DNA of 57,495 nt, the filler included, from Bipalium vagum (Eukaryota): NCBI GenBank assembly GCA_037834085.1. It is 3 parts of 3 records of this genome, joined end to end, with 100 filler letters (N's around TTAATTAATTAA, not from the genome) between each part and the next. Parts side by side here need not be neighbours in the genome. Positions count along the whole stretch, not along the records: positions 37,576 to 57,495 come from JBBMKC010264280.1; 2 more parts are not named here. One strand, 5' to 3'. The stretch's first letter is position 1. The number at the start of each line of letters is the position of its first letter. This document shows, in pieces, positions 37,576 through 57,495 of this stretch. The notes below the pieces were generated by a model. It searched no databases. It was not told where the DNA came from and was given only the letters and a program-made list of their open reading frames with translations. Position numbers and translations under genes: made by a program.

Positions 37576-38479
37576 TCTTTATCGAGGACCTCTGAGCCTA
37601 AGAGCGAGAGGATTTTTATAATTAATAAATATAATTAATAAAATCATTTTAATATTGAAAAAGAAAATCGGTCAGAATTGTCTCAATCATTGTAATTTGA
37701 TAACAATTTGAATAAAAGTATTAATTCGAAAATTTGTTTTCTTAGTTAAATTTAATTAAAGTCGAACACGAGCAAAAGCAACCTTCAACCGTTGAGACCT
37801 AAGTCACATATACGCTCCGACCTTTAAATATCCTTTTTATCCATCAACTTAGGATCTTAACAATATAAAAATCCATGAAGGACAATCACTCGTATGTGTA
37901 AAAACCCTTTTTAATATAAAATATAATTTAGAAAAACTTGATTTTGATTTAGTCATTTATATTCAATTTAAACCTTATTATTTTTCACAGCAATAATAAA
38001 ACTAACCTTCGCCGTTAAGACCTAATAAACATTGTTTTGAGCTCCACCTTCTATAACATTAAGATCTTAACAAATGTATTAAAATTTTTATATTCATCTA
38101 AAAAGTATTCATATTCATCTACTAAAATAGAATTCATTTATATTTAAATTAAGCTTTGAAGATATTAGTTCTTCAACTTCATTAAAAACCTCACCTTTAA
38201 TCATAAGGATAAATTCCTTTTTTTATGTTTTAGTTTAAATGATTTTTAAAATTTCGTACTTATTTGATTTACTAACATATTTCGGTGAATTATATGAATT
38301 TAAACTTTTTAAACAAAGATGGTTGCTATGATTTTTATTATTAGAAAATATGTTCATATTTCTACACAATTAAAAACTTATATATATAAAGATTTAAAAA
38401 TATTTATATAAGGTGTATAACTATTAATTACTTTTCTTCACATATCTCTTCTATTATTGAAAAGACAAATAGTGTCGAA

Positions 38480-39060
38480 TGATTTTGTTGACCTTAAAAT
38501 TTATTTATAAATTTGTCCGAATTTTTAGTTGTCATACTTTGCGCGATACCTTATCAATCGCCAGCAAAGAACTTACTGGAACAGTTCAATCCAAAATGAT
38601 AATAACAGAAAAATCTGAAGGAAAAGAGGAAGAATCGACAATTTTGGAATACATTGACTGCCTAAACGGCGGAAAACTGGAAGAGGACCATGCCGTACTT
38701 GGTGGGTTAAATGTTGAAACGCTGCAAAATATTTTGCTTCACTAAAATCCTCTACCCTATTTCATTTAAAAAATCAAATGATCTTCTATTGACAATCAAA
38801 CGAGAAAAAAATAGACTATCTTATCTTCACTTCAAAAGAAAGTAATCTGCTTCCAGCTTAACAAAGGCAACCAAGTGAATTAATGGTACATGTGGAGATC
38901 CTTAGGCACTTATCAAAGTCCAAGAGGAGTAACCAGTTGATAACTAATGGAAAAATTGATTTTTGTGACTGACAATATCTGCTGAACCTTTCCAGTAAGC
39001 ATTATTTAACAACACGATGCCGACTCTGCGACTACAAGTTGGAAATCCAGTCCCAAACTT
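38480..39060 (+). mobile_element. Decayed LTR-retrotransposon RT/RNase H fragment
   Basis: YIDCLNGGKLEEDH resembles YIDD....T.EEH; LCDYKLEIQ resembles the RNase H end. Confidence 0.5.
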
Positions 39061-39787
39061 GTCTGATTTTTTAATAGCATAAAATGTATACAATGTCCCA
39101 AAGAAAATATATTAAACTCAACAGATAAGCTTGTAGGATTCTAAAGAAAAATATCTTAATGAGAAAAACGATCAATTTTTGATGAAAACATAAAACAGAT
39201 CAAGCTCAAATCTTGCATTAATTATTGATTTGTAACCCATTCAATATTTCTAAAATCTTGATTCTTCTAAGATATTCTGTAAATTTATACTTTGAAAAAA
39301 ACATACATATTTTTTCATACACGAAAGTATTTCCTCGTTGATTTAACAATATTAATGTTAACCTGAAGCATATTACATTATAAAAACATCTATGGACCTT
39401 AAGAAACGATTTTTGATTTAATTTCGGTTAAATCCTTAAACAAAAAAATTTTTTTTACATCAAAATCGAAAAAAAATAAAATTTTCCTTTACTTTTCTTT
39501 TGTTAAAAACAGAAGAGGAAGTTGGCATTTTTATTCCCTGCTCTAGCTCACTACACAGTTCCCGTAATCATGACTTGAGCACGTTAACGAAATAAAATAG
39601 ATCAAACGACAATGCACACACGCATTCACAAAAAAATAACAAGATTTAGCTCCCAGTCTTTTTAGTATAAATTAAATCTCTGTTTGACTCTACATGTTTT
39701 ATTCAAGCTCCCAAACAATAATAACACACACACAAACACAAAGACGAAGGATAGGGGAGATAAGCAGAGTTTAGGGACCCGTCAATC

Positions 39788-42049
39788 TTATCGCCTGTCG
39801 TTCTTTCCCACCTTCCTCTTGCCCGAGTTCAAATGTTTCGGTTTCGTGTCTCCGATGTGTCTGTCTGATTCGCCCAGGCGGCCGTGACGATTGTTCACTC
39901 TCTGCGACACCTTGGACATCTTTCTGGTCTTGTCGGCCGCCTTGTCGTCCTTCAGCCCAGCGCGGGATCGCGACCTTGACGGATGGCATCTGGCGATCGA
40001 TTCACTTCGTAACGCCGACACCTCGACCGATTTTCTTCTCGTCGAGCGGCTTCTTGAACGAGCTTGAGCCTTGGCCAGTCCAGTCTGAAACGAAGAGATC
40101 AATGAAAAGTATCGATTACATTATATAATAATAATTTTTAAAAGATTAGAATAAAAAATCGATAAAAATTTTTTATAATCAAGAAATCAAAGATTATCAT
40201 AATCGATAATATTATAAAATAATTTTATCAAAATATTATTATAAAATCAATATAAATATGGATTTTTATATTATTTTTCAAACAAGAATGGATATTAAAT
40301 TAAAAAACATAAATAAAATATCTCAAGTCAATAGAAAAAATAGCCGCCAATCGTACCGCATCGTCCTCGACCTTCACGCCCAACTTCTTCATTCCGCTCT
40401 GGACTTGATCAATGGTGATCTTCTTGTTGACTCGACTAATGGATTTGCGCCCAGTCGTGTTCTTCTTTTCGATGTTGTCCAACTTCTTAAGCTCCTCCGC
40501 CTCCTGGATTGACTTGGCCAACTTTCTAGTGGCCTCTGGCAAAGGCTCATAATCGATCTTGTAGAAGTTGATGTCATCCAGCAGCTTTTCCTCCTTTCGG
40601 AATCGCTCTAGTGTCTCCTCGTCGATGTACCCGAAGTCGGCGATATTGTGTCCATTGTAGATTTCGGGAATTGTGTCGAAACGGTCCTGAGGTTTAGCGC
40701 CGGCCGTCCACTCCTGTCTCACGTTGTACGCAAACCGGTTTCCGGCCTCCTTCTGCACCTCGAACAACGTCTTACGCTTGGTGCTACCCGGGTTCTCCTT
40801 CTCCATAGCATCCTTTTGGCGCAGTCTCTCTAGAATGTCCTCGGGGATGTGCTCCGTCGCTGCCGTTTCCGACCGAACGACCTTATTAGCCACGTATAGT
40901 CGGTTCTTGAGCTCGTGTACATGTGGCCTCTCCAGCTTGCGCTGGACGCGACTTGTCAGAACAAGTTCGCACGCCGCGTTCCGCACCTCCATGACACCCT
41001 GCTCGGTTTTGGTTGACATCTCCATGACTACGACGACCTGTTGGCCGTCCCTGGTCGCCACTCGCTGAATAAGCGCCCTGTCCTCGTCACGAAGTTGGTC
41101 CATTGTCTTGACGTCAACTTTGTTCAGTGCGATGGTCAGCGGCTTGCTGCCAAATAGGGCCCGAATGTTCTCGAGCAGCCCCACTTGCTGCTCTATTGAG
41201 TAGCCGCACTGCTCCGACAGATCAATGACGAACAGCAGTCCAGCCTCCTCTAGCGCATCAAGTGCGGTGATGGCCAACATCTCACTGGTGTTGCACTCCG
41301 GCAGAGGCCGGTCCAACAAACCCGGTGTGTCGATGAACTGCCAACGCAGGTTTTGGTAGTCACAATGCCCCACGAATAGCGACTTGGTCGTGAACGCGTA
41401 CGGCTGAACGTCCACATCCGCCCGACTGATCTTGTTCATGAAACTCGACTTACCCACATTGGGAAACCCGCACAAAATCACCGTCCTTGTGCTTGTGTCT
41501 ATTGTCGGGAATCGGGACAAGTGTTGACGACACTCTTCCAAATACTGCAGACTGGCCTTCGTGACGCTTTTCATGATCAGCTTCGCCATTTTACCCAACG
41601 CCACGCGCTTCAGTGTCTTGCATCGGTAGGCCGAGTCTCCGAATTTGATCAATTTTGTGTGGTCTTTGGCAATACGATCTACTTTCGACTTGATATAATT
41701 GATGTGACTCAGAGCAGACTTGTACTCCTGTTCACCGTACAATGTGTTCATCAGATTGTGGTAGAATTTGTGGAGATTCTAAATACAAACTTTAATAATG
41801 AACAAAATTAATATCATTATTATTATCTACTTTTATGTCGGGAAAATCTTTCAGAATTTTATCCAATTTATCGTGAATATTTTGTTGGCATGTTTTTACT
41901 TTAAGGATATAAAATTTCCTGTGAGTACCTATTTGTGCACTTTTATGAATGACGGTGGCTGTCTTGCGTTGTGTTTTTGATAACACGACATCAAGTAATT
42001 CCTTGCTTGAAGGTACAACTTGAATTGATTTAAAATCGTGAGCAGGCAT
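39788..42049 (-). CDS. GTPBP4: Nucleolar GTP-binding protein 1, about 645 aa; exons 41831-42049, 40357-41778, 39788-40084
   Basis: [54 protein letters not shown]-terminal [18 protein letters not shown]; two phase-0 GT-AG introns. Confidence 0.97.
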
Positions 42050-42806
42050 TTAAATTTCGTTAAAATTGTGAATATTTAAACAAACATTGCGTAGTTATCA
42101 AAACATTTTAAATGACAATTTCTAGTTTTACATTTATCTTGTTCTAAATTTTTAGTTTTTTAGCAATGACCTTTACAATATTTTTTTATTTCTTTGTTTT
42201 ATTAAGATTAAGAGATACAAAAATAAATAATTATGTAAGAATTGATATTAAATTTTGAATTTGCTTTTCATTTTTGAACTAACTTAAAAAAAACTTTACT
42301 TAAATATAAATAAATACTTATGGAGTATTCTCCGTCGCTCTGGTAAAGATCTAATAAAACAAATTTTTTAAAATCCAAAACTCACGTAGTACAATTTTGT
42401 CACCATTTGAGAACTTTCTGGAGGATTATCCAGACTATTTTAAGACAATAATCATGTATTCTGTAAATAAATAAAAAAAAACTTTATTAAATTAAGAAAG
42501 CATCTTAATGATTTTAGTGATTGTAATTTTGATCATCAATATATTCTTTTAAACGCAATCTAATTCTTTTATTCAATTATTTGGAGTTTTGTGTTGATTT
42601 AGAGGAAAGTTATCACATCTATTCTAACTATATCTAATAACTCAACAATTTGTACACTTTACATTTTTATTTAAGGTAAACCATGTAGTAGACAGAAAAT
42701 CTCTACCAAAAATATTTAGATTGAAATTTTACGTCTTCGACTATACTATACAGAAAACTAAAAGAAAAACAGTTAAATTCTATGTCAAATTTTAAATGTT
42801 TTGAGC

Positions 42807-43010
42807 TTATTCTTTCAAAACTTTATCCACTGGTTCTTCAATGGCGTTTTCAGTAGTTAGTTCATCATCTTCAACAGTTGCTTTAAAACCTATCTGTTCG
42901 ACCATTTCCAATACAATTTCAGTTTCTTGAAAGATTTCACTTTCTTCGACTTCTGTCACTTCGACGTTCTCAACGACTTCGGAAACAATTTCAGAAACTT
43001 CGTTAGTCAT
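42807..43010 (-). CDS. Small acidic E/V/T-rich protein, copy 1 (67 aa, divergent C-terminal half)
   Basis: MTNEVSEIVSEVVENVEVTEVEE shared with three paralogues; conserved upstream TATAAATA block; frame stays open despite divergence. Confidence 0.75.
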   Translation of the reverse strand: MTNEVSEIVSEVVENVEVTEVEESEIFQETEIVLEMVEQIGFKATVEDDELTTENAIEEPVDKVLKE

Positions 43011-43092
43011 GTTAAGTTTTGATATTTTTGCAATATCGATTGTGTATTTATACTTGAAAAATGCACACAAGGGACGATGTAATCACGGGTAT
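43011..43092 (-). promoter_or_regulatory. Conserved core promoter of copy 1
   Basis: TACCCGTGATTACAT.GTCCCTTGTGT...AAGTATAAATACACA...AAAACTTAAC-ATG, shared by all four copies. Confidence 0.65.
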
Positions 43093-44089
43093 TAAATCAT
43101 TGTTCATTTTTAAAAAAACAAACTGGTTGATTGTAAAATATTTCTGAAACTTGGCTGTTTCAATTGTAATTATTGGACATTCATAATAGTTGAAAGACTT
43201 TCTATAGAGGACCGTTTGGAAATACTTCATTTATACTTAAATTCAGCACCTTTTTTGATTATATTGAATATTCTGTGGTTTTATTATAGGAAATGAATAT
43301 TTCTTTTTTGGTAAAAATTTTATTAATTCTCATTTATCCTTTCCATATTTTCTTAATATTTAATTATGAAAATATTTTTGGTATTTCTCAAATTTTAAAA
43401 ATATTTTTAGAGGGGTACAATTTATGTCTTAAAAAGCCAACTTAAATCGTTTTAATAATTTTTAGTTGATATATAATCCTTTAAAAATAAATATTTTACA
43501 AAAAAAGCTTTTAAAAGCAAAAAATATTTTTACAATTTTTGAAAACCAAATTTTTAAAATTTAAACCTTTGAAATCACATTTAAAATCAATTTATGGTAT
43601 GTCTTCAAATTTACACTATTTATGACTAGAATGCTTATTGATTGTTTACGTTAACATTGTTTGAATAAAAACAAAATGATACTCAAAATTTAGGTCTCTT
43701 ATATAAAAAACGAAAAACAAATCCAACTAAATTTATTTAAACCAATTTTTCCATTCTTAAAAATATTACTTGTTATATTATTGTCTTAAAACAATTAATT
43801 TTGATTTTCCCGAAAAAGATTTATTTGATTTCATTTGTTAATTTCTTTTCTCTTTCTTTTGCCTTTTGAATTACTTTTCTTTCTCTTGTTAATTTTCATG
43901 TTCCTCTCTTCACAATATTTCTAGATTATCTACTATTTCTTGTTGAAATAAAACTTCATCTTTATTTAAAACCGTAAAGATTTAATCAAAAGATAATATT
44001 AACACAATTGTAATAGGGAAAAGTATTTATACTTATAAACAAAAAAGATAAAACATTAGTATTTTGATTAAAAGAAATGTTTCTTTTTA

Positions 44090-44730
44090 CAGAGAATTTT
44101 TCTGTAATTCTTTCTCATAAAATCACCCAATAATATCTATCTCCCATTGAAATCAATAATTCCATATACAATTGGTTTGAAATAATAAAATTTATTTATA
44201 ATAAATATTTTATTTCTCCATTTTGGTGCATTCTATTTTCAAATTTATTTTTATATTTAAAGTTTCTACTTGGCTTCCTATATGGTATTTGGATTTTTAA
44301 GTTAATTGAGAAAAATTATTATTTTCAGGTTTTCCTTCTTTGTTCTGAATTTCCGATTGATTCTTGAGGAGACATACCAATTGAATTATGAATTTTGTTA
44401 TTATAAAAATTAATGAATTTATGCAATAAATTTATTCTAATCTCCGTTTAATTGCTATGGAATTGTTTTAAATATTTAATTTTTCAAAGTTTTATTAAAT
44501 CTTTCAATGAAAACTGCTTTTCCTTCATTTCTATTTGAGTAAGTTTCTATTTCGTTTCCATCACAAAAATCGTCCAATATTTGATTTTAAAGTTCTGTAT
44601 CTTTATCAAACAAAAGTCTTTCGGATTTTCTTTGACGATAGTCTTTAAATCTATTATCAAAAGAATCTGTTACAGATTTTCCAGTTTTATTTTTGAAATG
44701 AGCAGAAAAAAGAAATCTAGTGTATAGTGG
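44090..44730 (-). pseudogene. Polinton/Maverick integrase remnant
   Basis: KNKTGKSVTDSF..LLFDKDTEL..IETYSNRNEGKAVFIERFNKTLK..YNNKIHNSIGMSP..KPIVY.I.D.NG..FYEKELQK, with stops and frameshifts. Confidence 0.88.
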
Positions 44731-44949
44731 AGATCTGAATATTTTTCCTGAATTGTTTTTATTTTGTAATTTCTTGCTGTGTTTTTATTGTTCTAGATGT
44801 TAATTTAGTCATTAATGATGTTATTTTATCGTTGTTATCATTAATTTTTCGTTTATTTTTTGTGATTATTGTTTCTTCATGATGATATTTTTTCAAGTGT
44901 TTTATTCGGTAATAACTGCCAAAATAATCCAGTTTCAGCGTTATTAAAG

Positions 44950-45638
44950 ACATTATTTGAATCATATTTTTCGCTTGCATCTTGTAGTATGTGCTGCTAC
45001 CACTTATTCGAATTTCTCGAGACATTCATTACTTGCTGTAAATTTATCAATTTTTAAGACATCTGCAAGTTCTCTTGGATTTTCTTGTAGCAACTGACCA
45101 TCGATAGGAACGTTCTGACCTTTGCATTTTTAAAACTATATCAAAACAACCTCGTTCAAGTTTAGAAATTCTAGTCGTTTAATTATGGTACGCTTCATTC
45201 CTTTTCTATTAGCTAATGCAGACCTGATAGGCGATTTAGCTTTTATAATTCCAAGTGCGCTGGTGAACATTAAATCGCTTAGTAATTTCATTGTGACTTG
45301 TATTCATTTCTGTAGGTTGTATGATCGGTTTTCTAATTAAATTGTTATTTTGTCTTTTATCTTTGCTTTGATTGAATATTTGGTTGATTTTGTCGAAAAT
45401 TATTTAATTAACACAGTAATCAATAAAAATTAACGTATTTTCCATTTATATAAGTAGTACAGATTTGGTTTTAAAGTGTGATATTTGAGTGTGATTTTTA
45501 GAAAATAGAAAAATATATTGTTTATTTATAAATGTCATCTTAGAGTAGTGCTTTTACGACAAAATATATTTCTTTTTATCGGTATTTTGATCTCCTGTCA
45601 TCTTGGAGAGAATATTATCTTAGAGAAGTTCGACTGTA
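44950..45638 (-). mobile_element. pogo/Tigger 5' remnant
   Basis: Minus-strand TA-CAGTCGAACTTCTC TIR; NVPIDGQLLQENPRELADVLKIDKFTASNECLEKF resembles a CENP-B-type HTH. Confidence 0.75.
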
Positions 45639-45774
45639 TTTCAGATTGATTAAACATTTCCAAATTATTAAATGTTCTATCATATTCACTTTTGAATAAT
45701 TGCAATTTCTATTAAATAATTAAATCTTTTTTATATGGAAATGGAGCAGTCCGATTAATAATATTATTGGCGAA

Positions 45775-45808
<34 letters not shown>

Positions 45809-46429
45809 CATAACTGTTTAGCGAAAATATATTATTTATCTCTCCTATTTCTTCTTCTGTTAAATAGTTTAAATCAATGGTTTTCTTTAAAAAAGTATTT
45901 AATTAAGATTTCCGATTTCCTCTTTGTATAAATAAATAAAAAGTACCTGTTATTTTTGTAAAATTAAAAAGTTTTTTCAATTTTGTAATTATTTAAAATT
46001 TTATTTATTTTTGAAGAAAATTGACTTTAAACTTTTCTCAACTACACAAAATATACCCTGTTTGTAAATACATCTTTTAAGGTGAGCAGTTTTTGTCTTC
46101 ATTTTTGGGGGAAACAAAAGTTGGGGTACAAACAGAGTACCTTTTGTGTAAGCTCTCTTAGATTGAGAATACCATTCTTTTAGGAGTTACTTTTGTACTC
46201 GGTTTCCCCTAATTATTTAATCCTAAAATTGACACAAATAATTTATCACATCGTCCAATACCATTTCTATGATTATTAAATTATTGACTTTGGCAGTTTA
46301 CTACAAAGTTAAATAATACTTAATGGCATCTGGTATTCTGGGATCTTTTGAAAATTAGTATGATTAATTAGTTAATTAATTAATTAATTAGTCATCTATT
46401 ACAAATGAATCCAATAAGAACACAGCGAT

Positions 46430-47030
46430 TGAGGTTAAAAAATATTTATTATCACAATTACAATTTCTATGAATAACTTTTTTCTTGGTCTTCTATTATT
46501 AAATAATCTTTTTCATGAAGGAGTTCAAAAGTTTTATAAACTCTTCATAAGTTATGTCGAGAATAATGGGACGATATATAAAGACAACACTAGGAAGATT
46601 ACCTTTTCCGATGCTGCCCTGTTGTTCTATCGACTCCTATTCTGACAATAGAATCGTCATTGAACGATAAAAGTAATCATATAACAAAATATCTAATTTT
46701 TATCATCAATCTGCAAAATATCGATTGTCAATAACGAGTGTAGAATCCACGACACTGCATGACACTGTAAACTTTTCGTGTCATGGAGGAAATTATTGAA
46801 TGACGGAATGAATTGCTACTGATCAAATCAATCACATTTGTTGTAGTCGAAGGAACAGGTCATCAGCACTTTCAGGTGGTTTAGGATCGTTCCTTATATT
46901 AGTTTTCATAATGACTCAACAATTTTCAATCTTATTTAAATCTGAACTGTATGGTGGTACATTAAAAACGTGGATATTATTGGCTTGCTACCAATGGTTT
47001 GTAAGTCGAGCATTATGGACCGGACTATTA
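46430..47030 (-). mobile_element. IS630/Tc1-like transposase remnant
   Basis: FNVPPYSSDLNKIEN resembles PPYSPDLNPIE; a decayed DNxPVH lies upstream. Confidence 0.55.
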
Positions 47031-48068
47031 TTTTGTATTTTGGATTATGTGATTTGCATGAAAAAGATTTTTATTTGCGTATTACTCTGATCTTAAATTA
47101 TTTAAGGGAAATTTTTTTTCTGTAAAAAGTACAAAGGTTAATTATTTCTCCTAGAATTATATTACTTTGTTGTGTTACATATTTCTTCGGTATACTTCTA
47201 ATTCGCTCCCTAAGACAATCTGGTGTAAATATACAAATGCTCACTTCCTCCATCGCAGAAATAAACGAAAGTTCAAGTTATACATTCAAAAATAATTTTA
47301 AAAAAGGGTAAATATAAATTTAATATTTAATACTTCAAATAACGAACACGTTAAGCCAATGAATTCAAACCATTTAACAAAAGACAAATTAAAATAATAT
47401 AATAATCTTTTTCATATGATAAATGCTATGGAACACCTAACAACTCAACTAATAATGAAATTCAACTAAAACTTTGTGTGGATCATGGGATACAACTACT
47501 TTTTACTGTGTCTTTTATACCAATGATGCATACAAAATATGAACCATATTCCTTTCCATTATTAATAGCAGCCAAAAGAAGTAATATTATTTATATTTAT
47601 TTATTTCAGTACTCATTTTGAAATTTCGATTTTGGAACTTGGGAGATTAAATAATGAGATTTTGTTGAAAACTGTACAATACATTTTGTGTCAATTTCAT
47701 AAACTGAAAAGATATTCTGGCGTTCCCTTAGCTTAACACCTGCACTCCGTAAAGCAGAAGCCTCACATTTACAACGATTTTGGTATGAAAGATTTAAAGG
47801 TAACGATTTTATACGAGAGGATTCGACATTTCAAAGGACTTGACAAAGGTAATGTCAAATAAAAAGAAATCATTTAATACTTTATAACCAATAGTTAATT
47901 TTTGAAAGAAATCGATTTTGAAACGATAACATTTTTACACTTTATTTAACATAAAACATCTCTTTACCAAGACTAATTAAATGGAATCTTTACGTCTTCG
48001 ACTACTCCACAGAAAACTAGAAAGAAAAAAACAGTTAAATTCTTTGCCAAATTTTATTAAATGTTTTA

Positions 48069-48293
48069 TTAGGCTTGTTCTTCCACAACTTCTTCAACTG
48101 TCTCTGCAGCAGTAACTTCAGTGGTTTCCTCAGTAGCTTCTTCAATAACTTCTTCATTAACTTCTTCAGAAACAGTTTCAGAGACCTCGCTGACTACGTT
48201 CTCAGTTTCTTGAACGATTTCCTTTTCTTCGACTTCAGTCACTTCGACGTTCTCAACGACTTCGGAAACGATTTCAGAAACTTCGTTAGTCAT
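48069..48293 (-). CDS. Small acidic E/V/T-rich protein, copy 2 (74 aa)
   Basis: Intact ORF, synonymous and in-frame differences from paralogues, TATA upstream, AATAAA overlapping the stop. Confidence 0.8.
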   Translation of the reverse strand: MTNEVSEIVSEVVENVEVTEVEEKEIVQETENVVSEVSETVSEEVNEEVIEEATEETTEVTAAETVEEVVEEQA

Positions 48294-48376
48294 GTTAAGT
48301 TTTGATAATTATCGCAATGACGATTGTGTATTTATACTTGAATAGTGCACACAAGGGACAATGTAATCACGGGTAT
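48294..48376 (-). promoter_or_regulatory. Conserved core promoter of copy 2
   Basis: Same ~83-bp block with TATAAATA. Confidence 0.65.
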
Positions 48377-48748
48377 GCAATCATTGTTCATTTTAACAAA
48401 CAGCAGCTGGTTGATTATAAAATATTTCTGAAGCTTGACTATTTCAATTTGAATTATTGGAACATTCATAATAAGTGCAAAACTTTCTTTAGAGGACCGT
48501 TTGTAAATAGTTCATTTATACTTAAATTCAGATTTTTAAATTGAATTATGAACAAAACAATAAATCGTGAAATCAGAATTTATCTCTGACTCAAAAAATG
48601 AGATCTTGACTACATTATTATAAAAATACGGAAGCATCCTAAATTCACTTCACCAATTATTGTCAATTCCTGATTAACACAATCTCTAAATTCTAAAGTT
48701 AGTTTGCAATCGGTTGAGTGAGTGTTTGATGAAACCGACAGTGATATA

Positions 48749-48831
48749 ATACCCGTGATTACATTGTCCCTTGTGTGCATTTTTCAAGTATAAATACACA
48801 GTCGTCATTGCAAACATTATCAAAACTTAAC
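48749..48831 (+). promoter_or_regulatory. Conserved core promoter of copy 3 (TATAAATA at 48789-48796)
   Basis: Same ~83-bp block; TATA starts 43 nt before the ATG. Confidence 0.65.
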
Positions 48832-49056
48832 ATGACTAACGAAGTTTCTGAAATTGTTTCCGAAGTCGTTGAGAACGTCGAAGTGACTGAAGTCGAAGAA
48901 CAAGAAATCGTCCAGGAAACTGAGAATATAGTCAGCGAGGTCTCTGAAACTGTTTCTGAAGAAGTTACTGAAGCAACTGTTGAAGAAACCACTGAAGTTG
49001 CTGCTAAAGAGACAATTGAAGAAGCAGTTGAAGTTGTGGAAGAACAAGCCCAATAA
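48832..49056 (+). CDS. Small acidic E/V/T-rich protein, copy 3 (74 aa)
   Basis: Intact ORF, head-to-head with copy 2; AATAAA overlaps the stop. Confidence 0.8.
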   Translation: MTNEVSEIVSEVVENVEVTEVEEQEIVQETENIVSEVSETVSEEVTEATVEETTEVAAKETIEEAVEVVEEQAQ

Positions 49057-50795
49057 AATATTTAATAAAATTTTGCACATAATTATTTCGCTTTTATTAT
49101 GTTTATTTTGTGATTTTTTAAATTATCAAATAAATATGGCACGGGTAATCGAATCACATTATTTGAATGTGTAAAATATATATTCAAATGATTTTTGAAA
49201 TTGCGCGGTTTTAATGAATGTTGTTTTACTATGTTAAAAATTCTCTGCGAAATAATATTTTCCTGTTTAAAGACATTAGTTTTAAGATAGTGTGTCCGTA
49301 GTTAGGGCATTTGTAAGTTAATAATACAACAATAATAAATGAGCTCACTGACAATGTGTTTATAAAGAAGATACGCTTTCTGTAGCCATGATAAATAGTA
49401 AAGAAATATTTTTTGTAAATTTTTCATTTGAACAATTTTAAATAATATATTTTTATTGGTTATTATGCAAAATATTTTGATAATCATCCAATGTTAGCGG
49501 TTAATTTAAAATACACCAGTTGAAAAAAGTTGATCGAGGATGTAAAATAGCTTCTGCAAATCAAAATTTTACTCTTAGACTTGATGATTCTTTAAATTTT
49601 GCATCGTGTCCATTATAAAAGTACAATTTGGATTTCTATATATAAAAGGATATTTTCCACATTATTTTAATACAACAAAAATCAAGGTTTTACGATATAT
49701 GGTTATGATTAAATGGGTTAAAATCCGTCTTTGAACAATTTGTTTATATGCATCTGGGAGACATTAAATATAGATAAAAGTTTAACACAAATTCTTTTGA
49801 AATCTTTATTTTTCATATAAATAAATATTTATGAAATCTTATTAAAGTATTATTAAGTTATTAAAAATTTTTAATGCATATAAACAAATTGTCCCAAAGA
49901 CGGTTTTAATTAATTAAATTAAATGTATTACAACTGAAAAAATACAAATTATTAAAACTATGACTGATGAAACATTATAAAATAATGAAATTTGTACTTT
50001 TACAAACCAAAGATTTTATTATTTAACAGATGTTATGATTTCAGCTGAGTGTTGTTTAATTTATAGTGATTAATGTTTCAATATACAACAAAATGGTCCT
50101 TTCCAATATATGACAATTGCAAAAATTTGTACAAAGATATTTATGCCAATGATAAATATTAAAATACTTTGAATTCCGAGATACAATAACTTTATATGCG
50201 ATGTATATTCTTATAAATTGGTTAGCATATTTAAGTACAATTAATAATAAGCAAATTCGCGATGCAAAAGGAGGAAAAAGACTTAATATAATAAGTCATA
50301 TAAAGTTGTTATATTTAAAAGTTCAACGATTGTCTTAAACGTTAATAATGAAAAAAAATTTTTCATGAAGCTGAAAACGTTTCTAAACCTGTGTCTGAAA
50401 TTGTCGAACCGCGACGGGTTCTGAAGAAATTGTTGAATATACTGAAGTATTTTCTAAAGACGCCTTTTTATAGATTTTCTCCCAGCCAATAGAAGCTTCT
50501 ACATGCTTATGCTGCCTCGCAAGCATCAGGAATATCATTTTCTCCTTTTTTTCAAAAGATAATGGAGCACTGAGCCTTTTACGATGATCTCATCTCGAAT
50601 GCATTTGATTTAGCTTAATAATTAATTCGCCTTCTTTCATCTAACTTTAACTAATTCTCTCTATACTCCCCTTTTCATTCACTAATGAAGCAATTCTTGT
50701 AATTAACATAACAAAAAACCACACCACTAAAATTTTACTTTGTTTTCACATCATACCACTCGTTGTTATCATTGCCACACTTATTACTCTTATTA

Positions 50796-51019
50796 TTGGG
50801 TTGGCAACTAAGTTTGTGCGCTTTTTAATATAAAAATTTTTCAAACTAATATATTAAAAAATTATATTAAAAATTAAAATATATTAAAAATTTAGTGGAA
50901 AGATGGCAGAAGGTTATTCTTAATAATGGTGAAGATATCATTGATTAAAACTGTTATTATCAATAAAATTTATGGTTCTCATTTCTTCTGAAAAAGCGCA
51001 AACTTAGTTGCCAACCCAA
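50796..51019 (+). mobile_element. Mariner deletion derivative (MITE)
   Basis: TIRs TTGGGTTGGCAACTAAGTTTG / CAAACTTAGTTGCCAACCCAA, TA on both sides, internal NLVERWQKVILNNGEDIID* (transposase end). Confidence 0.9.
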
Positions 51020-51639
51020 TATTCTTTTTTGTTATTGACGATTTCATGTTTAACCAGCAAACTGAGTTTCATAAAAAAAGTGCAGATTATTGCATCATAT
51101 GAATAAATAAACAAATATAATGACAAGAATGAAATATAATAAATTTCGTTAATTTTTTTCCTTTGGTTAGTGGGTACAACAAGGGGTGATTTGTTTAACT
51201 TAACAAATTAAATCATTTTATTTAATTTAATCAATTTATCCAATTTTGTTATAACATTCAATTTTATCACCAATCTTCTTTAGTGTTACGCAATTGTTAT
51301 CATTACTAGAAGTTGATACATTTCATTTCATCAAATCACAACAATTTATCATGAGAATTTCAATTTATTCGTTTTACAAGATTGTAATTAGACTTGAAAA
51401 TAGTGATAATAGCAGATGGCGCTGTAGATCATGTAAAAATGTAGTATATTTAGGCATTCTATTTTCGAACAAACGAAACTAACAATATCTACAAGTCTAA
51501 GTGTTAATCATTATTATTGTGTAGGAACAAAAATTTCTCATATAGCTAACGTATTAATGTTACAAGAAAATTTGTTTCAAAATTTATTAATAAAGTTCAA
51601 TCTCCAGTCGAGTCTTAATTTCTAAGGGAAATTTGCGAA

Positions 51640-52090
51640 ATCAGCAGGTCATTTCATAGATGAAATTGATGAGATCCACTTGATAAGTTTAAGAAATTCT
51701 TGTGGACGAATTTAAAAAGATGCATACCACTGGGTTTTCGGATGTATTGAAAGAAATCCCAGTGAAATTCGATTTCAAATATGTAGAAAAAAGTCCAAAG
51801 AAATTTGTAAGAATTTCATTTTAAATAACATTCATAGTTCAGCCTAATTAATAACAAATTACTGGCATGGTTACAAAGGATTATTTAAATTTCATTATTT
51901 ACAATGCACTGAAAATTATTGATTTAATTTTATTTAATCAAACGAATTTGAGAACAGTTAAAAAGAAAATTCGGAAGACAAATGATTTTGATTTGATTAA
52001 GAGGAATATTAAACGATTTTAACTTTTTCATAATTTTGGTCTCAAAGCACCATCTGAAAAATTTAAAATGTTGATTGAAATTAATAAAAT
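51640..52090 (+). mobile_element. Merlin/ISXO2-like transposase remnant
   Basis: EIDE, HWVFGCIER and ITNYWHGYKGL (resembles ITDxWxGY). Confidence 0.7.
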
Positions 52091-52615
52091 GTATTAGTTA
52101 TTAATTACATAATATTCATGAGTAATAATCAATAATCTTTTTCATATACCATTTTTACTATACTTTTTAACCTTCGTTGTCATAGAAGTACAAATGTTAA
52201 ACAAAATGTCCCATTTCGTACTCGGCTACCACAATTAAACTGAGAAAGGAAATTGTTGACAGTTGATAAATTAAAATCAAAATTATATGAAAATTTGAAT
52301 TAAAATTAAAGAAATAAAAATGAGAAGTTCTGACTGAGAAAATCAAAGAATAAGTAAATTTAAGAAAAAGAATAAAAAAATTCAAATAAAAATATTCAAA
52401 ATTAAACTTGTAACCAGAGCCTATATTCAAATAAAGTTTACACAAAATTCAAAGGAAGTTATAATAAAATAATTGGGAATTTAATTCTTCTTAACACAAC
52501 GACATTAATTCTGAAACAACCACTTTAACAGTCAGAAACATTTTAAATCAACTTTGAAAATTTATCAAAACTCGGTGAAAATATTAACAATAAAAAATGT
52601 AAAGGCATTAAATTT

Positions 52616-52828
52616 TTATTGATCTTGCACTACAACGTTTTCTACTGTCTCTTCAGCAGCAACTTCAGCGGTTTCCTCAACAGTTTCTTCATTAGCTTCT
52701 TCAGAAACAATTTCAGAGACCTCACTGACTACGTTCTCAGTTTCTTGGACGATTTCCTTTGCTTCGACTTCAGTCACTTCGACGTTCTCAACGACTTCGG
52801 AAACAATTTCAGAAACTTCGTTAGTCAT
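52616..52828 (-). CDS. Small acidic E/V/T-rich protein, copy 4 (70 aa)
   Basis: Intact ORF, conserved promoter, AATAAA overlapping the stop. Confidence 0.8.
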   Translation of the reverse strand: MTNEVSEIVSEVVENVEVTEVEAKEIVQETENVVSEVSEIVSEEANEETVEETAEVAAEETVENVVVQDQ

Positions 52829-52911
52829 GTTAAGTTTTGATAATGTTCGCAATGACGATTGTGTATTTATACTTGAATAGTACACACAAGGGACAATGTA
52901 ATCACGGGTAT
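52829..52911 (-). promoter_or_regulatory. Conserved core promoter of copy 4
   Basis: Same ~83-bp block with TATAAATA. Confidence 0.65.
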
Positions 52912-53099
52912 TATATCACTGTCGGTTTCAGCAAACACTCACCCAACCGATTGCAAACTAACTTTAGAATTTAGAGATTGTGTTAATCAGTAATTGACAA
53001 TAATTGGTGAAGTAACCGACATTCTTATTTTGATTTTGGATTTGCTTATTATACTTTTCATAATATTTGCATAATTTGTTCAATAACACCAATGGACCT

Positions 53100-54330
53100 T
53101 AGTCTGCGAATGCTTTAGTATTATTTTTTTCCACAAAAAGATTTATCTTCTAGAATATGTTAAGTTACAACTGCACCATTTAAAGATAAATTTCCTTGTT
53201 GATCTTTGAAATCAAAACAAAATACAGAATATAAATTTTTATAATCTAATAAACTTAGTTAAGGGTTATTATTAAAATATTTATATAATATTAATAATAT
53301 ATATTATAATATTTAATAATTTAAACGCTTTTACATAATTTGAACAAGTTCTATTATTCTCACCCTTTTCAACTTGAATTGGAATTAAAGGTTAATAAGA
53401 ATCATTCACTTGTATTCTTAAAGATTTAATTTTATCTTGAATAAATGAACTATTATTTTTATTAAAATAAAATTATGATTCTCTAAAAGTAATAAAAATA
53501 GAAAATCGTTTATTTGGTACATTGTATAATTGTAAAGTTTGTCTTGTACATTCTGTAAGATTTCTTTCTTCACCATGTGTTGATAAGAAATATATATATA
53601 TATAGTTTTTTCATCATCAGTTCTTGAAAGTAATTCTAGTTCTCTACTCGGGTTTTATTGTAATTATGGAATAAATGGATTTAAATCTATTAATTTTTTT
53701 GTCAAACTAAGTTGTACTAGACTTTGAGATATCTCCTTTTAGTCCATAAAACATTTCTGAATTAATATCAATTTTTCTTGTAATTGTTAATTCTCCTTGC
53801 ATATTATAAACAACTCTTAAAAAATTGTAAAATAACCAAAGATCAATTTTAATGGAAAATCACCTATACATTTATTATTTGAATACAAACTTTTTCTTTC
53901 ATTGAATTTTCTTTAATTTTATCTGGTATCAAACCAAATATTCGTCCATCATTATTTTCATCAATTATTACAAAATTTTTAATAGAATTTGATGGTGCAA
54001 CATTTCAATTGTTTCTACATCAGTTGAACCTAATTTTAAGGATGTATTAGGAAATAAATATAGAAAGAAGTTATTCTATAACATAGTATTTTCATCCGCT
54101 TTTATATCTTTAATTTGAATTTCAGAAACCATAATTTGTTTTGATAAATTTTAGACATTTGCTAATTGTAATAAAGAAAAGTTAGATTTCCATTATTATT
54201 TAAATTGATTGAAGTTATTAAATTTAAAGATATTTCTAAATAAATCACACTTTCTTGATGTCTAGTTTTGAAGATAATAATTTTTATCTATATCTAATTT
54301 TCACATTTTTATTAGAAAAAAATTGAAAAA
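53100..54330 (-). pseudogene. Polinton/Maverick major capsid protein remnant
   Basis: NNFFLYLFPNTSLKLGSTDVETI, FPLKLIFGYF..VVYNMQGELTITR, IQVNDSY*P, DYKNLYSVFCFDFKDQ, in the order expected for a Polinton MCP. Confidence 0.72.
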
Positions 54331-54419
54331 ATAAAAATATATTTTTAAAATACACTTGGTATTATCGGGAAATACAACCTCAGAATGCTGAAGGCACTTT
54401 CTTTATTATTTCTCTGACA

Positions 54420-55580
54420 CAGATGATTTTACCCATACTTCTTCTAAATTAATAAAAAATCCAGGGTTATCCAATAAGGTATGTAGGATGTTTATTTGAA
54501 ATAAAACACACTTTAATTAACAAAGTCAGATAATTTTTATTTAAAAATAAAGTACAATGCTTGGCAATTATACATGAAAAACAATATCGACCAAATGTTC
54601 ACTACGATTCATTTTGCAGGAAATTATTCTTTTGTCTAAATTTACGATTACTCCGGAACATAATTGTGAGTAAATTTCTCGAATTACCCGCCGAATCTCA
54701 GCTTTGAGTACGTCTATTGTTTGCGGATTATTTGTATAAACCTTCCTTTTTAATTGACCTATATCGCATTTATTTTATAAATAAAAAAATCAATAAATTT
54801 ATTAATCATTTGGCTTATATACTTTATAAACATCCTATATACTTTATTGGATAACCCTGTATTTATATTTTTCTCTCATATATAAATTGTATAAATAATC
54901 AAGTTCATATTTTTCCATAAAACTTGTTAACATTTTAGAATATATTTGATTTTGAAATTTTAAATAAAATTAAAACATTGCATTCTTTCTTAAAGATAAA
55001 TTAAAAAATGATTGAGATAAATATATTATAAAATATTTATTGTCTTCCTCTTGTAAAATACATTTCCATAATATGTTGATTTTTTCCATTTATTACATTA
55101 TCAAAAATAATTAAATTTATTTTAGTTTTATCTAATTTATCTGGAGGTTAAATTTCATTAATTTTATCAGATAATGTAAGTTATATTAGACATGGTCTCC
55201 AGGTAGCATCACCCTCATTTCCTTTTGTTTAATCATAATCAATGGCTTTGCCATTAAGATCGTCATAATTTTTATTGTCTTCAAATTTTTGTTTTATTTT
55301 ACTTTTAAAAATTTCATAAACTTCTTTAGATAATCCATGTTCAAAGGAATCTCATATATTTAAATTCTGATTAAGTAAAAGCAGTTTTAGATAAAATTAT
55401 AAGATTATTGTAATGTATATAGTTTTCTTGTAAAAGCATATTATACTATAAATTTGTTTTTCCTTATCCAGAAGGACCAATAAGTAATATTCTAAAATTT
55501 TTGGTAAATTAGGATGATTAAATTTTATTTCACTATAATAAAGATTTACCATATGTTCTGACAACTTTCTCTTATTCCCC
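54420..55580 (-). pseudogene. Polinton packaging ATPase (A32/FtsK-like) remnant, interrupted by a MITE
   Basis: FRILLIGPSG*GKTNL (Walker A), NLIIFDN (Walker B), YFTRGR, IYLSQSFFNL. Confidence 0.85.
54462..54859. mobile_element. Tc1/mariner-type non-autonomous element, about 400 bp
   Basis: TIRs CAGGGTTATCCAATAAGGTATGTAGGATGTTTAT / ATAAACATCCTATATACTTTATTGGATAACCCTG-ta. Confidence 0.85.
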
Positions 55581-56149
55581 ATTTTTTATAAATTTTTTAA
55601 AATCTTCTTTAATAACAATCATTCTTGTCAAAAAAGACAGAACAAGGATAAATATCCGTAAAAGGAAATAGAAATCGAAAACTCCGTCCATTCGTCCAAC
55701 CTTCTAACGAGATCAGTGAAGGAATCAGTGAACCTTCTACGTTTTACAGTAAATTATTAATTGTCATTTTATTTATTATTCTTTTGAGAATTGCTATTTG
55801 ATTTCAAATTGAACAATTCTAAATCTAATTTGATTACAAGTTAGAAACTATTTAAATTAATTAAGTCGAAGTAATTGGATAGATCCCCAATTACTTTCGA
55901 AATTATCAAACAAATTTTATATTTTTGTTTGTTGTTATTTTTTTGCCTTCTCAACGTCAAGTAGGACGGAGAGGCGCTTTTTACTTTTGAGGGCTCTTGA
56001 GGCTAGGATAGCGAAGAGCATAAATAATATCATTCTGATTTTTCTCCGGGATTTACTAGTAAAATTTCGCTTATTTGTTCAATAAAGATTTAGATAAAAT
56101 TTTTAAACTTATAAAAAATTTTGTTTTTGATTTGACTTAGTGAACTTTT

Positions 56150-56790
56150 TATTCATTTTATTTACGAAGGAATTGAAATTGATTAAAAAAAACCATCGAA
56201 ACATTTAACTCTTGAAATTATTCATACAAAGTTGTTGCAATTATCCTAGTCGATTAAAAATCAAACACATTATTTTTCTAAATCTCAAACCGAACGACAC
56301 ACACTCTAAATCCTTCTGATCAATTTTATAATAAACGAGCCACGTTAAGTTTTGGAAAGATATTTAGAAAGATATTAAACTTAACAATATTCTCATTACA
56401 CAGTTTGAAAAAATTTGATTATCATTAATTGTTATATAATACTCTTCTGGTTTTAATGATTCTAATTCTTTTATACTTTTAAGTTCATTCTCAATATATG
56501 CAGATATATCAGAAATGTCATGTTTCAGCAGTTATCTTTATCTTTCGAGATTTTTTTCATTTTGAATCTGTAATAGATACATCTATTCTATTATTTTTTC
56601 AAGTAATATTGAAAATAGATTAATAAGTTGAAAAATAAATTAAAGCTAAATCATAGTTATAATTTGGATCAAGATTTTGTGGTGTTCCCAACTTAAATGT
56701 TTTATCCGAGTTTTTAGTTTTTACAATAAATGATATTGAAAATTTTTTAAATAAAAGATTTGATATCTTTTGTAAAGATGATTTCATTTT
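56150..56790 (-). pseudogene. Polinton minor capsid (penton-like) remnant
   Basis: PQNLDPNYNYDLALIYFSTY*SIFNIT*KNN resembles the penton N-terminal motif; lies next to the ATPase and MCP on the same strand. Confidence 0.6.
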
Positions 56791-56886
56791 TTAAAAATAA
56801 AACATTTTAATTAGAATCTGGATCAAATTTAACTTTTATTTCTTCACAATAATTATTGGTGATACTCTTTTGCTTTTTTAATTTAA

Positions 56887-57495
56887 AGGGTGTATACGAA
56901 AAAAACTGGTCAGCAAAATACAGCTATCAAATCCACATTTATTTAGCTAAACACAAAATTTATGAATATCCAAAAACGTAATAAGAATATATTTACAAAA
57001 AATTACATATTTTATTATATGGCGGTATTGTATGCAAAAGATCGAAGTTTGGAATTCACACTTCGCATTAGGTTCTGCACATCATTTTGAGTAACCTGAG
57101 GTGATATTTTGACGCATTCCTTTTCAAATTCCTTTTCATTTTTCACGTTTTGTTTTGTTAACAATAATTTCTTTTTCATTATAGCCCAATATTTTTCAAT
57201 TGGTCAGAGTTCCGGACAATTGGGAGGATTAGCACTCTTCGGTACAATGTTGATCCCATTCTCATTGTACCAGTCGATGGCCGATTTTCCATAGTGACAT
57301 GTTGCCAAATCAGACCAAAACACAACTGGAACGTAATGAACAAGTAACATAGGAAGAAGTCGTTTCTGCAAGCACTCCTCAACATAAATAAACATAAACA
57401 TTTGATTCATAGTACCAAAGGTTACAAAAACCCTGCTTTTCAAATCACATTTACAAATTGCTTGCCAAACCAAATATTTTTTTGCGAACTTGTCC
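56887..57495 (-). mobile_element. DD37E (ITmD37E-type) transposon, 3' part
   Basis: VWQAIC..YVEECLQKRLLP..FWSDLATCHY..NPPNCPEL*PIE, with 37 residues between D and E. Confidence 0.85.

Follow-up and report, generated by a model that had tools for sequence, protein, structure and literature searches.

Four clustered ORFs for putative small, hyper-acidic proteins in the genome of Bipalium vagum

A cluster of four short ORFs with an invariant N-terminus

The window analyzed in this work is a stretch of 57,495 nucleotides from Bipalium vagum (assembly GCA_037834085.1). Its 19.9-kb piece 37576-57495 (JBBMKC010264280.1), which was the part under study and in which the open reading frames (ORFs) were listed, contains four intronless ORFs for strongly acidic proteins of 67 to 74 amino acids, and we rate the chances as about even that they represent a real protein-coding, lineage-restricted family of small disordered polyanions. 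Residues 1-22 (MTNEVSEIVSEVVENVEVTEVE) are the same in all four copies, and in the alignment of the four proteins 31 of the first 33 columns are nearly identical. Within these 22 codons the DNA differs just at codon 8 (ATT/ATC) and codon 19 (ACA/ACT), each change being synonymous. Both the set of four intronless ORFs with an invariant N-terminus and the synonymous nature of the N-terminal differences had been described in the initial annotation of the locus, and ORF listing and alignment confirmed them. The length differences among the copies are all in frame.

The ORFs, given here including their stop codons, are c1 at 42807-43010 on the minus strand (67 aa, net charge -19), which is the most divergent copy, c2 at 48069-48293 on the minus strand (74 aa, net charge -26), c3 at 48832-49056 on the plus strand (74 aa, net charge -24) and c4 at 52616-52828 on the minus strand (70 aa, net charge -22). 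Local blastn and tblastn searches of the 19.9-kb piece, run with filters off, retrieved exactly four copies and no fragments.

Promoter, start region and 3' end of the conserved unit

Conservation peaks around the start codon. From -100 to +93 relative to the ATG the copies share 86-97% identity in all six pairs, with 86-95% in the upstream part (-100 to -1, six of six pairs) and 91-97% in codons 1-31. Further upstream, from -250 to -101, identity is 47-51% between the groups c1/c2 and c3/c4, and 85% and 78% inside these groups. The rest of the coding sequence, from codon 32 on, is 56-60% identical between c1 and the others and 76-90% among c2-c4, and the 60 nt directly after the stop show pairwise identities of 47-74%.

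A TATA box (TATAAATA) is present in all four copies and begins 43 nt before the ATG, or 42 nt in c1. It is located at 43052-43045 in the upstream block of c1 (43011-43110, minus strand), at 48336-48329 in that of c2 (48294-48393, minus strand), at 48789-48796 in that of c3 (48732-48831, plus strand) and at 52871-52864 in that of c4 (52829-52928, minus strand). Nine nucleotides upstream of the TATA box all four copies carry an element of about 31 nt, ATACCCGTGATTACAT[T/C]GTCCCTTGTGTG[C/T]A, with two variable positions only (48376-48346 on the minus strand in c2), which makes it a candidate for either a transcription-factor site or a proximal sequence element. No in-frame ATG precedes the conserved one, which carries an A at -3. 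With the usual distance from TATA box to transcription start, the 5' untranslated region would measure 10-18 nt and the whole mRNA about 300 nt. At the other end, the polyadenylation motif AATAAA overlaps the stop codon in c2, c3 and c4. Two such motifs lie within 48053-48070 (minus strand) in c2, one across the stop and the second 11 nt beyond it, and two within 49052-49069 (plus strand) in c3, one across the stop and the second 8 nt beyond it; in c4 the motif across the stop lies at 52620-52615 (minus strand).

The block from -100 to +93 may also be read as the functional unit itself, serving as promoter and first part of a non-coding transcript in which the ORF is incidental; one option is a layout of the small nuclear RNA promoter type, with an element of about 31 nt, a 9-nt gap and a TATA box in this order. 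The near-invariant block directly 5' of the TATA box, an upstream region conserved like the first 31 codons and the lack of a T4 run before the stop in c2-c4 fit such a transcript. However, c1 does contain an internal TTTT (codons GGT TTT AAA), and the scarcity of T runs elsewhere follows from the amino acid composition. Inside the block mostly third codon positions vary, the divergent c1 retains acidity and frame, Rfam returned no match at E up to 1, and the predicted RNA structure does not exceed shuffled sequence in stability (z = -0.18). On the last two results a structured non-coding RNA was rejected as candidate, and we regard the non-coding transcript in general as unlikely.

The fall in conservation after codon 31 admits a further explanation, namely that each ORF is the first exon, or another part, of a larger spliced gene with a longer product. 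At this point c1 (ATT/GTATTG) and c2 (AAC/GTAGTC) have a GTA like the splice donors GTAGAT and GTACGA of the neighboring gene NOG1. We consider larger spliced genes quite improbable, because c3 has ATA instead of GTA there, c2-c4 stay 76-90% identical up to near-coincident stops with overlapping AATAAA, and no downstream conserved exon is common to the copies.

Duplication and repeat structure of the locus

Judged from the alignments, the likeness of the four copies is paralogy and not chance, because it runs on into the non-coding flanks. Sharing is mosaic: c1 and c2 have the far upstream region and the 3' flank in common, c3 and c4 the far upstream region, and c2 and c3 the 3' half of the coding sequence; therefore recombination or gene conversion has acted on the locus. 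The copies were also considered as cargo of a transposable element, and this was rejected, as sharing is limited to gene units of 0.4-0.6 kb without bracketing terminal repeats and no transposon backbone is common to all copies.

Copies c2 and c3 are arranged head-to-head, their start codons 538 bp apart, and make up an inverted repeat with arms of 325 nt that match at 85%. Arms of this length and complementarity, 320 nt apart, might serve as the source of a hairpin RNA or of small interfering RNAs. This is very improbable, since c2 and c3 point outward from their own promoters, so that read-through from outside would be needed, and a hairpin RNA would be expected to pair better than at 85%.

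The tail of the coding DNA is a degenerate 12-nt tandem repeat. The initial annotation had taken the frame-preserving length differences as a sign of selection. The observation itself holds throughout, but it is weaker evidence than was supposed, since such a repeat slips in frame by construction and two or three frames are open in c2-c4 regardless. Between c1 and c2 the tail (42810-43010 vs. 48072-48293) is 59% identical and thus less alike than the flanking non-coding DNA, which reaches 85% upstream and 74% downstream. This excess divergence points to repeat-driven turnover or diversifying change.

The same repeat structure gives rise to the view that the copies are a locally amplified, repeat-derived low-complexity segment without protein function, a unit of about 0.4-0.6 kb that was duplicated and partly homogenized by conversion and whose ORF is open merely since GAA/GTT-rich 12-nt repeats hold few stop-prone codons. 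The 12-nt periodicity of the coding DNA, the two or three open frames of c2-c4 and the mosaic similarity, which indicates conversion or recombination, agree with a functionless repeat. The codon statistics described in the following section bear on it in both directions.

Evidence for and against a protein-coding function

The four copies have only the sense frame open in common. Copies c2-c4 also have an open codon-aligned antisense frame, and c3 and c4 a second open antisense frame; these antisense frames are open because the sense sequence avoids TTA, CTA and TCA. In c1 the codon-aligned antisense frame is broken, and the sense frame alone is open. Other open frames across the acidic ORFs extend over 48932-49171 (plus), 48039-48302 (plus), 48823-49122 (minus) and 52547-52837 (plus). 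Copy c3 is overlapped by a frame-shifted Lys/Leu-rich ORF of 80 aa that resembles a cationic amphipathic peptide, and c2-c4 are overlapped by codon-aligned antisense ORFs rich in Phe, Asn and Ser. The alternative ORFs are probably incidental, since the GAA/GTT composition yields them, no ATG is conserved among them and they are broken in c1.

Pairwise comparison of nonsynonymous (dN) and synonymous (dS) divergence divides the ORF into two parts. In codons 1-31 dN is 0.014-0.056 and dS 0.11-0.27, with differences mainly at third positions. From codon 32 to the end dN/dS is about 1 (0.6-1.5). Retention of the frame was compared with a neutral simulation that used the local AT-biased composition and the observed count and regional distribution of differences. 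When c2, c3 or c4 was allowed to diverge to the level of c1, the frame stayed open in 18-20% of the runs, a charge of -19 or below was kept in 0.2-1.2%, and both together occurred in 0.05-0.3% (P about 0.0005-0.003). Among c2-c4, a scarcity of K, R, H, F, Y, W, L, M, C, G and P as observed was reached in 0.1-0.9% of the simulated runs. In addition, the fourfold degenerate sites of c2 hold 22 T, 8 C, 2 G and 3 A, whereas intergenic A equals T; if A and T were equally likely, 22 T against 3 A would arise with a one-sided probability of about 8e-5. With the counts of all four copies added up, AAC outnumbers AAT by 12:3. This strand bias at synonymous sites is as expected of a transcribed and translated sense strand.

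These results tell against a functionless repeat. With 56-59 substitutions c1 has lost the repeat purity and the antisense ORF but keeps the sense ORF, its stop lies within a few codons of those of the others, and its charge is still -19, a combination covered by the joint probability given above. A sharp conservation peak on TATA box, ATG and codons 1-31 with mostly synonymous changes is likewise hard to reconcile with such a repeat, and a skew of T over A at synonymous sites is not expected of junk. We consider the functionless repeat possible, but doubtful.

Several observations weigh against a protein-coding function. First, dN/dS is about 1 in the tail, in line with a functionless repeat, and slippage together with conversion in the 12-nt repeat could hold composition and frame without selection. 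Second, the upstream non-coding 100 nt are conserved to the same degree as the N-terminal codons, so that the N-terminus could be invariant through gene conversion or promoter constraint, with no selection on a protein. Third, both the simulation and the skew were evaluated post hoc, on four non-independent paralogues with few sites. Fourth, c1 has AATAAG in place of a canonical AATAAA near its stop. Finally, no homologue that would show conservation between species was found in the searches made, which also fits a functionless repeat.

Taking both sides together, we lean slightly toward a protein-coding reading of c1-c4. The statement of the initial annotation that the ORFs are under selection holds in part: low dN/dS in codons 1-31, frame and acidity kept beyond neutral simulation and the synonymous skew speak for it, while the tail does not follow, and any constraint on codons 32 to the end would be compositional at best. 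A search of public sequencing runs yielded one run with 77% of the locus words. Promoter and spacer words are included, and this run, which is not on record as RNA, is therefore probably the genomic source.

Composition and predicted properties of the proteins

Residue counts agree with the earlier description of copies 2-4 as proteins with about one third Glu and without aromatic residues, Cys, Gly, Pro, Leu and Arg. Glu accounts for 31-36% (22-27 residues) and Val for 23-26% (17-18 residues) of c2-c4, and F, Y, W, C, G, P, L, R and H are absent; there is one K apiece, and c4 has one D. The composition of c1 is milder, with 28% Glu, 3 L, 2 F, 3 K, 1 G and 1 P. The C-termini of c2-c4 read EEQA, EEQAQ and VVVQDQ. 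Computed masses are 7.6-8.2 kDa and isoelectric points are at or below 4.05, the floor of the program. Net charge ranges from -19 to -26, corresponding to -0.28 to -0.35 per residue at a fraction of charged residues of 0.34-0.38.

Hydrophobic as well as acidic residues show a periodicity of 4.0-4.1 positions, a tetrapeptide spacing that matches the 12-nt tandem periodicity of the coding DNA. In the N-terminal segment Val or Ile occupies positions 5, 8/9, 12/13, 16, 18 and 21 among Glu residues, and this segment could fold as an amphipathic acidic helix upon binding of a partner. AlphaFold2, with the four-sequence alignment as input, returned a mean predicted local distance difference test score (pLDDT) of 48 and mainly coil for c1, and a mean pLDDT of 55 with a single continuous low-confidence helix for c2. 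The proteins are thus predicted to have no stable fold and to be disordered proteins of the strong polyelectrolyte type, and as a prediction the disordered polyanions of the initial annotation are supported by charge values and pLDDT alike.

The N-terminus MTNEVSEIVSEVVENVE contains six acidic residues and no hydrophobic core, so that direct reading of the sequence, made without a predictor, finds no signal peptide, as had been stated before. Acidic secreted proteins are common in biomineralization and saliva, and export of the present proteins as salivary, seminal or mineral-binding components would be an alternative to an intracellular role. With an acidic N-terminus that lacks a hydrophobic stretch, and hence a signal peptide, we consider export as improbable as a hairpin function of the c2/c3 pair, and the candidate of a secreted salivary or biomineral acidic protein was dismissed on the same ground.

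Genomic neighborhood and source lineage

The piece 37576-57495 is rich in AT; outside one gene its GC content is 22-31%. This gene, mentioned for context only, is NOG1 (nucleolar GTP-binding protein 1; 39788-42049, minus strand) with three exons; about 760 bp separate its start codon from c1, which lies upstream in the same orientation. Exon 1 of NOG1 (approximately 41837-42049) is AT-rich like its surroundings, whereas exons 2 and 3 have about 55% GC and codons ending in G or C; the two introns of about 55 and 270 nt are both AT-rich. The rise in GC from 5' to 3' is also seen in a Logan contig (SRR33002330), which, together with an entry found only in UniParc (UPI0006005A0A), is one of two relatives that share 75% identity with NOG1 (40303-41751). 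All other NOG1 matches range around 43-51% identity, animals and fungi alike. Because NOG1 is so distant from nearly all of its matches, the source lineage is, by sequence, a poorly sampled, fast-evolving, long-branch eukaryote, and the organism itself is absent from the protein collections. The Logan contig of 2,081 nt keeps both NOG1 introns at the positions found here, which identifies it as genomic and not as a transcript. It ends inside NOG1 exon 1, and the region upstream of NOG1 is beyond its reach.

At the other end of the piece, 57018-57494 (minus strand) holds a transposase-like remnant over two frames that ESM Atlas features assign to DDE_3 (Tc1/mariner-type) with scores of 0.93-0.94; the matched DDE_3 clusters are commonest in arthropods. 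Pfam gave no match for this remnant. A further segment at 54571-54774 (minus strand) presumably resembles it. The initial annotation had called the surrounding transposon DNA decayed. One frame-split DDE_3-like remnant is in accordance with this, and confirmation by Pfam was not obtained.

Searches for relatives

None of the searches for families, structures or homologues retrieved a relative. Pfam-A, searched with all four proteins at E up to 1, gave sub-threshold noise only, and NCBIfam only noise far below the cut-offs. Neither a profile search of the PDB nor ESM Atlas features revealed relatives of the acidic proteins. With c2 as query, a word-indexed collection of 5.8 billion proteins yielded no match, exact-sequence look-ups of the c1, c2, c3 and c4 proteins were likewise empty, and an exhaustive profile search of 1.84 billion representatives gave no match at E up to 0.001. 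On the DNA level, a 23-nt exact pattern found no match in metagenome and viral contigs, and scans of viral and metagenome contigs with back-translated patterns were empty as well. The family is therefore an unrecognized one, as originally proposed, with no clear match to any known family.

It has to be considered that a low-complexity query of 70 aa passes E-values scaled to billions of sequences only if the target is near-identical. Since the lineage is poorly sampled and the query short and of low complexity, the empty searches are weak evidence of true absence. "Orphan" is hence a correct description of c1-c4 and weak evidence of deep novelty.

Proposed mode of action and significance

If the protein-coding reading applies, the four local duplicates, with one pair head-to-head, would each be a compact unit of roughly 300 nt, driven by a TATA box and free of introns, that is transcribed and translated in the sense frame into a disordered polyanion of about 7.6-8.2 kDa without signal peptide. 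The invariant N-terminal 22-31 residues would form an amphipathic acidic segment that acts as a specific interaction module, and the tail would provide charge density, its sequence being free as long as the Glu/Val/Thr-rich composition stays. Such proteins might reside in the cytosol or the nucleus and act by electrostatics. They may neutralize polycations, such as histones, sperm nuclear basic proteins, ribosomal or RNA-binding proteins, polyamines or divalent cations, in a fuzzy complex of the prothymosin-alpha type; alternatively, they may serve as a charged shield against aggregation in the manner of Hero proteins. By analogy, a specific electrostatic mechanism of either kind is a tentative suggestion. 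Likewise speculative are the roles named in the initial annotation, namely a histone or protamine chaperone, a cation buffer, a stress protectant or a nucleic-acid mimic. Somewhat more speculative is the idea that c1-c4 are an undescribed family of Glu/Val/Thr proteins of about 8 kDa, with a conserved module of 22-31 residues and a fast tetrapeptide tail, which would function as dedicated polycation neutralizers or chaperones, or as flexible competitors of nucleic acids, and would be an invention independent of prothymosin and Hero proteins.

Should the proteins be made, they would represent a clean, naturally occurring case of a minimal polyanionic disordered protein with a fixed recognition module and a tail defined by composition only. 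Four diverging copies in one locus would then offer a test of what selection sees, charge density and tetrapeptide pattern or the exact sequence, and the locus would show tandem-repeat slippage feeding the birth of orphan genes. If unexpressed, it is an ordinary local repeat. Small low-complexity orphan ORFs are common in unannotated genomes; this locus is tidy and shows real signs of constraint. Such genes would probably escape automatic annotation, as they are short, of low complexity and without homologue in the libraries searched, and c1-c4 exemplify the content that is lost in unannotated genomes of poorly sampled lineages.

Comparison with known systems

Prothymosin alpha and histone H1 form a high-affinity polyelectrolyte complex in which both partners stay disordered (PMC7661507, PMC10576128). 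Like prothymosin alpha and parathymosin, c1-c4 would be small, extremely acidic, disordered polyanions without signal peptide, and high-affinity disordered complexes with polycations are a plausible model for their action. In contrast to prothymosin, they are rich in Glu, Val and Thr with almost no Asp, Gly and Lys, they show a tetrapeptide periodicity, and they belong to a fast-evolving multicopy cluster instead of a conserved single gene. Prothymosin has a basic nuclear localization cluster at its C-terminus, and none is present in c2-c4 with their single Lys, the lack of Arg and the C-termini given above. Membership in the prothymosin/parathymosin family, to which the initial annotation had alluded, was not borne out, as the Pfam profile gave no match at E up to 1 and the C-terminal hallmark is missing.

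Hero proteins protect their clients from aggregation by high charge and disorder (PMC7067378, PMC10052238). This class is defined by properties and not by homology, and comprises small to medium-sized, highly charged, disordered and poorly conserved proteins. The in-silico half of this description fits c1-c4, as predicted from a charge per residue of -0.28 to -0.35 and mean pLDDT values of 48 and 55. They differ from Hero proteins in a Val and Ile content of about one quarter of the residues, which is unusually high for such acidity, and in the strictly conserved N-terminal module.

DSS1/Sem1, likewise acidic, disordered and about 70 aa long, binds its partners via acidic patches and needs conserved aromatic residues. 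Its gene is universally conserved and single-copy, unlike the cluster of c1-c4, and membership was rejected in view of the missing Pfam match and the lack of F, Y and W in c2-c4. DNA mimics such as phage T7 Ocr present a very high carboxylate density and compete for DNA-binding proteins (PMC3439906, PMC7064336). The known representatives are folded, with charges in a DNA-like pattern, whereas c1-c4 have no confident predicted fold and no sequence relatives in the PDB. Rigid mimicry of the Ocr type is less likely because of the missing confident fold, while a flexible polyanionic competitor would be compatible with the predicted disorder.

With regard to gene organization, c1-c4 resemble taxonomically restricted, tandem-duplicated small genes that arose from short tandem repeats or were expanded by them, which likewise form a local cluster with compact TATA promoters and no introns. 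The internal 12-nt repeat, the fast divergence of the repeat and the lack of homologues are further points of likeness. Such genes are a descriptive category rather than a family, and the category is silent on function. As judged from their sequences, c1-c4 are a new and sequence-unrelated family within the small polyanionic disordered proteins and the tandemly duplicated, repeat-derived orphan genes.

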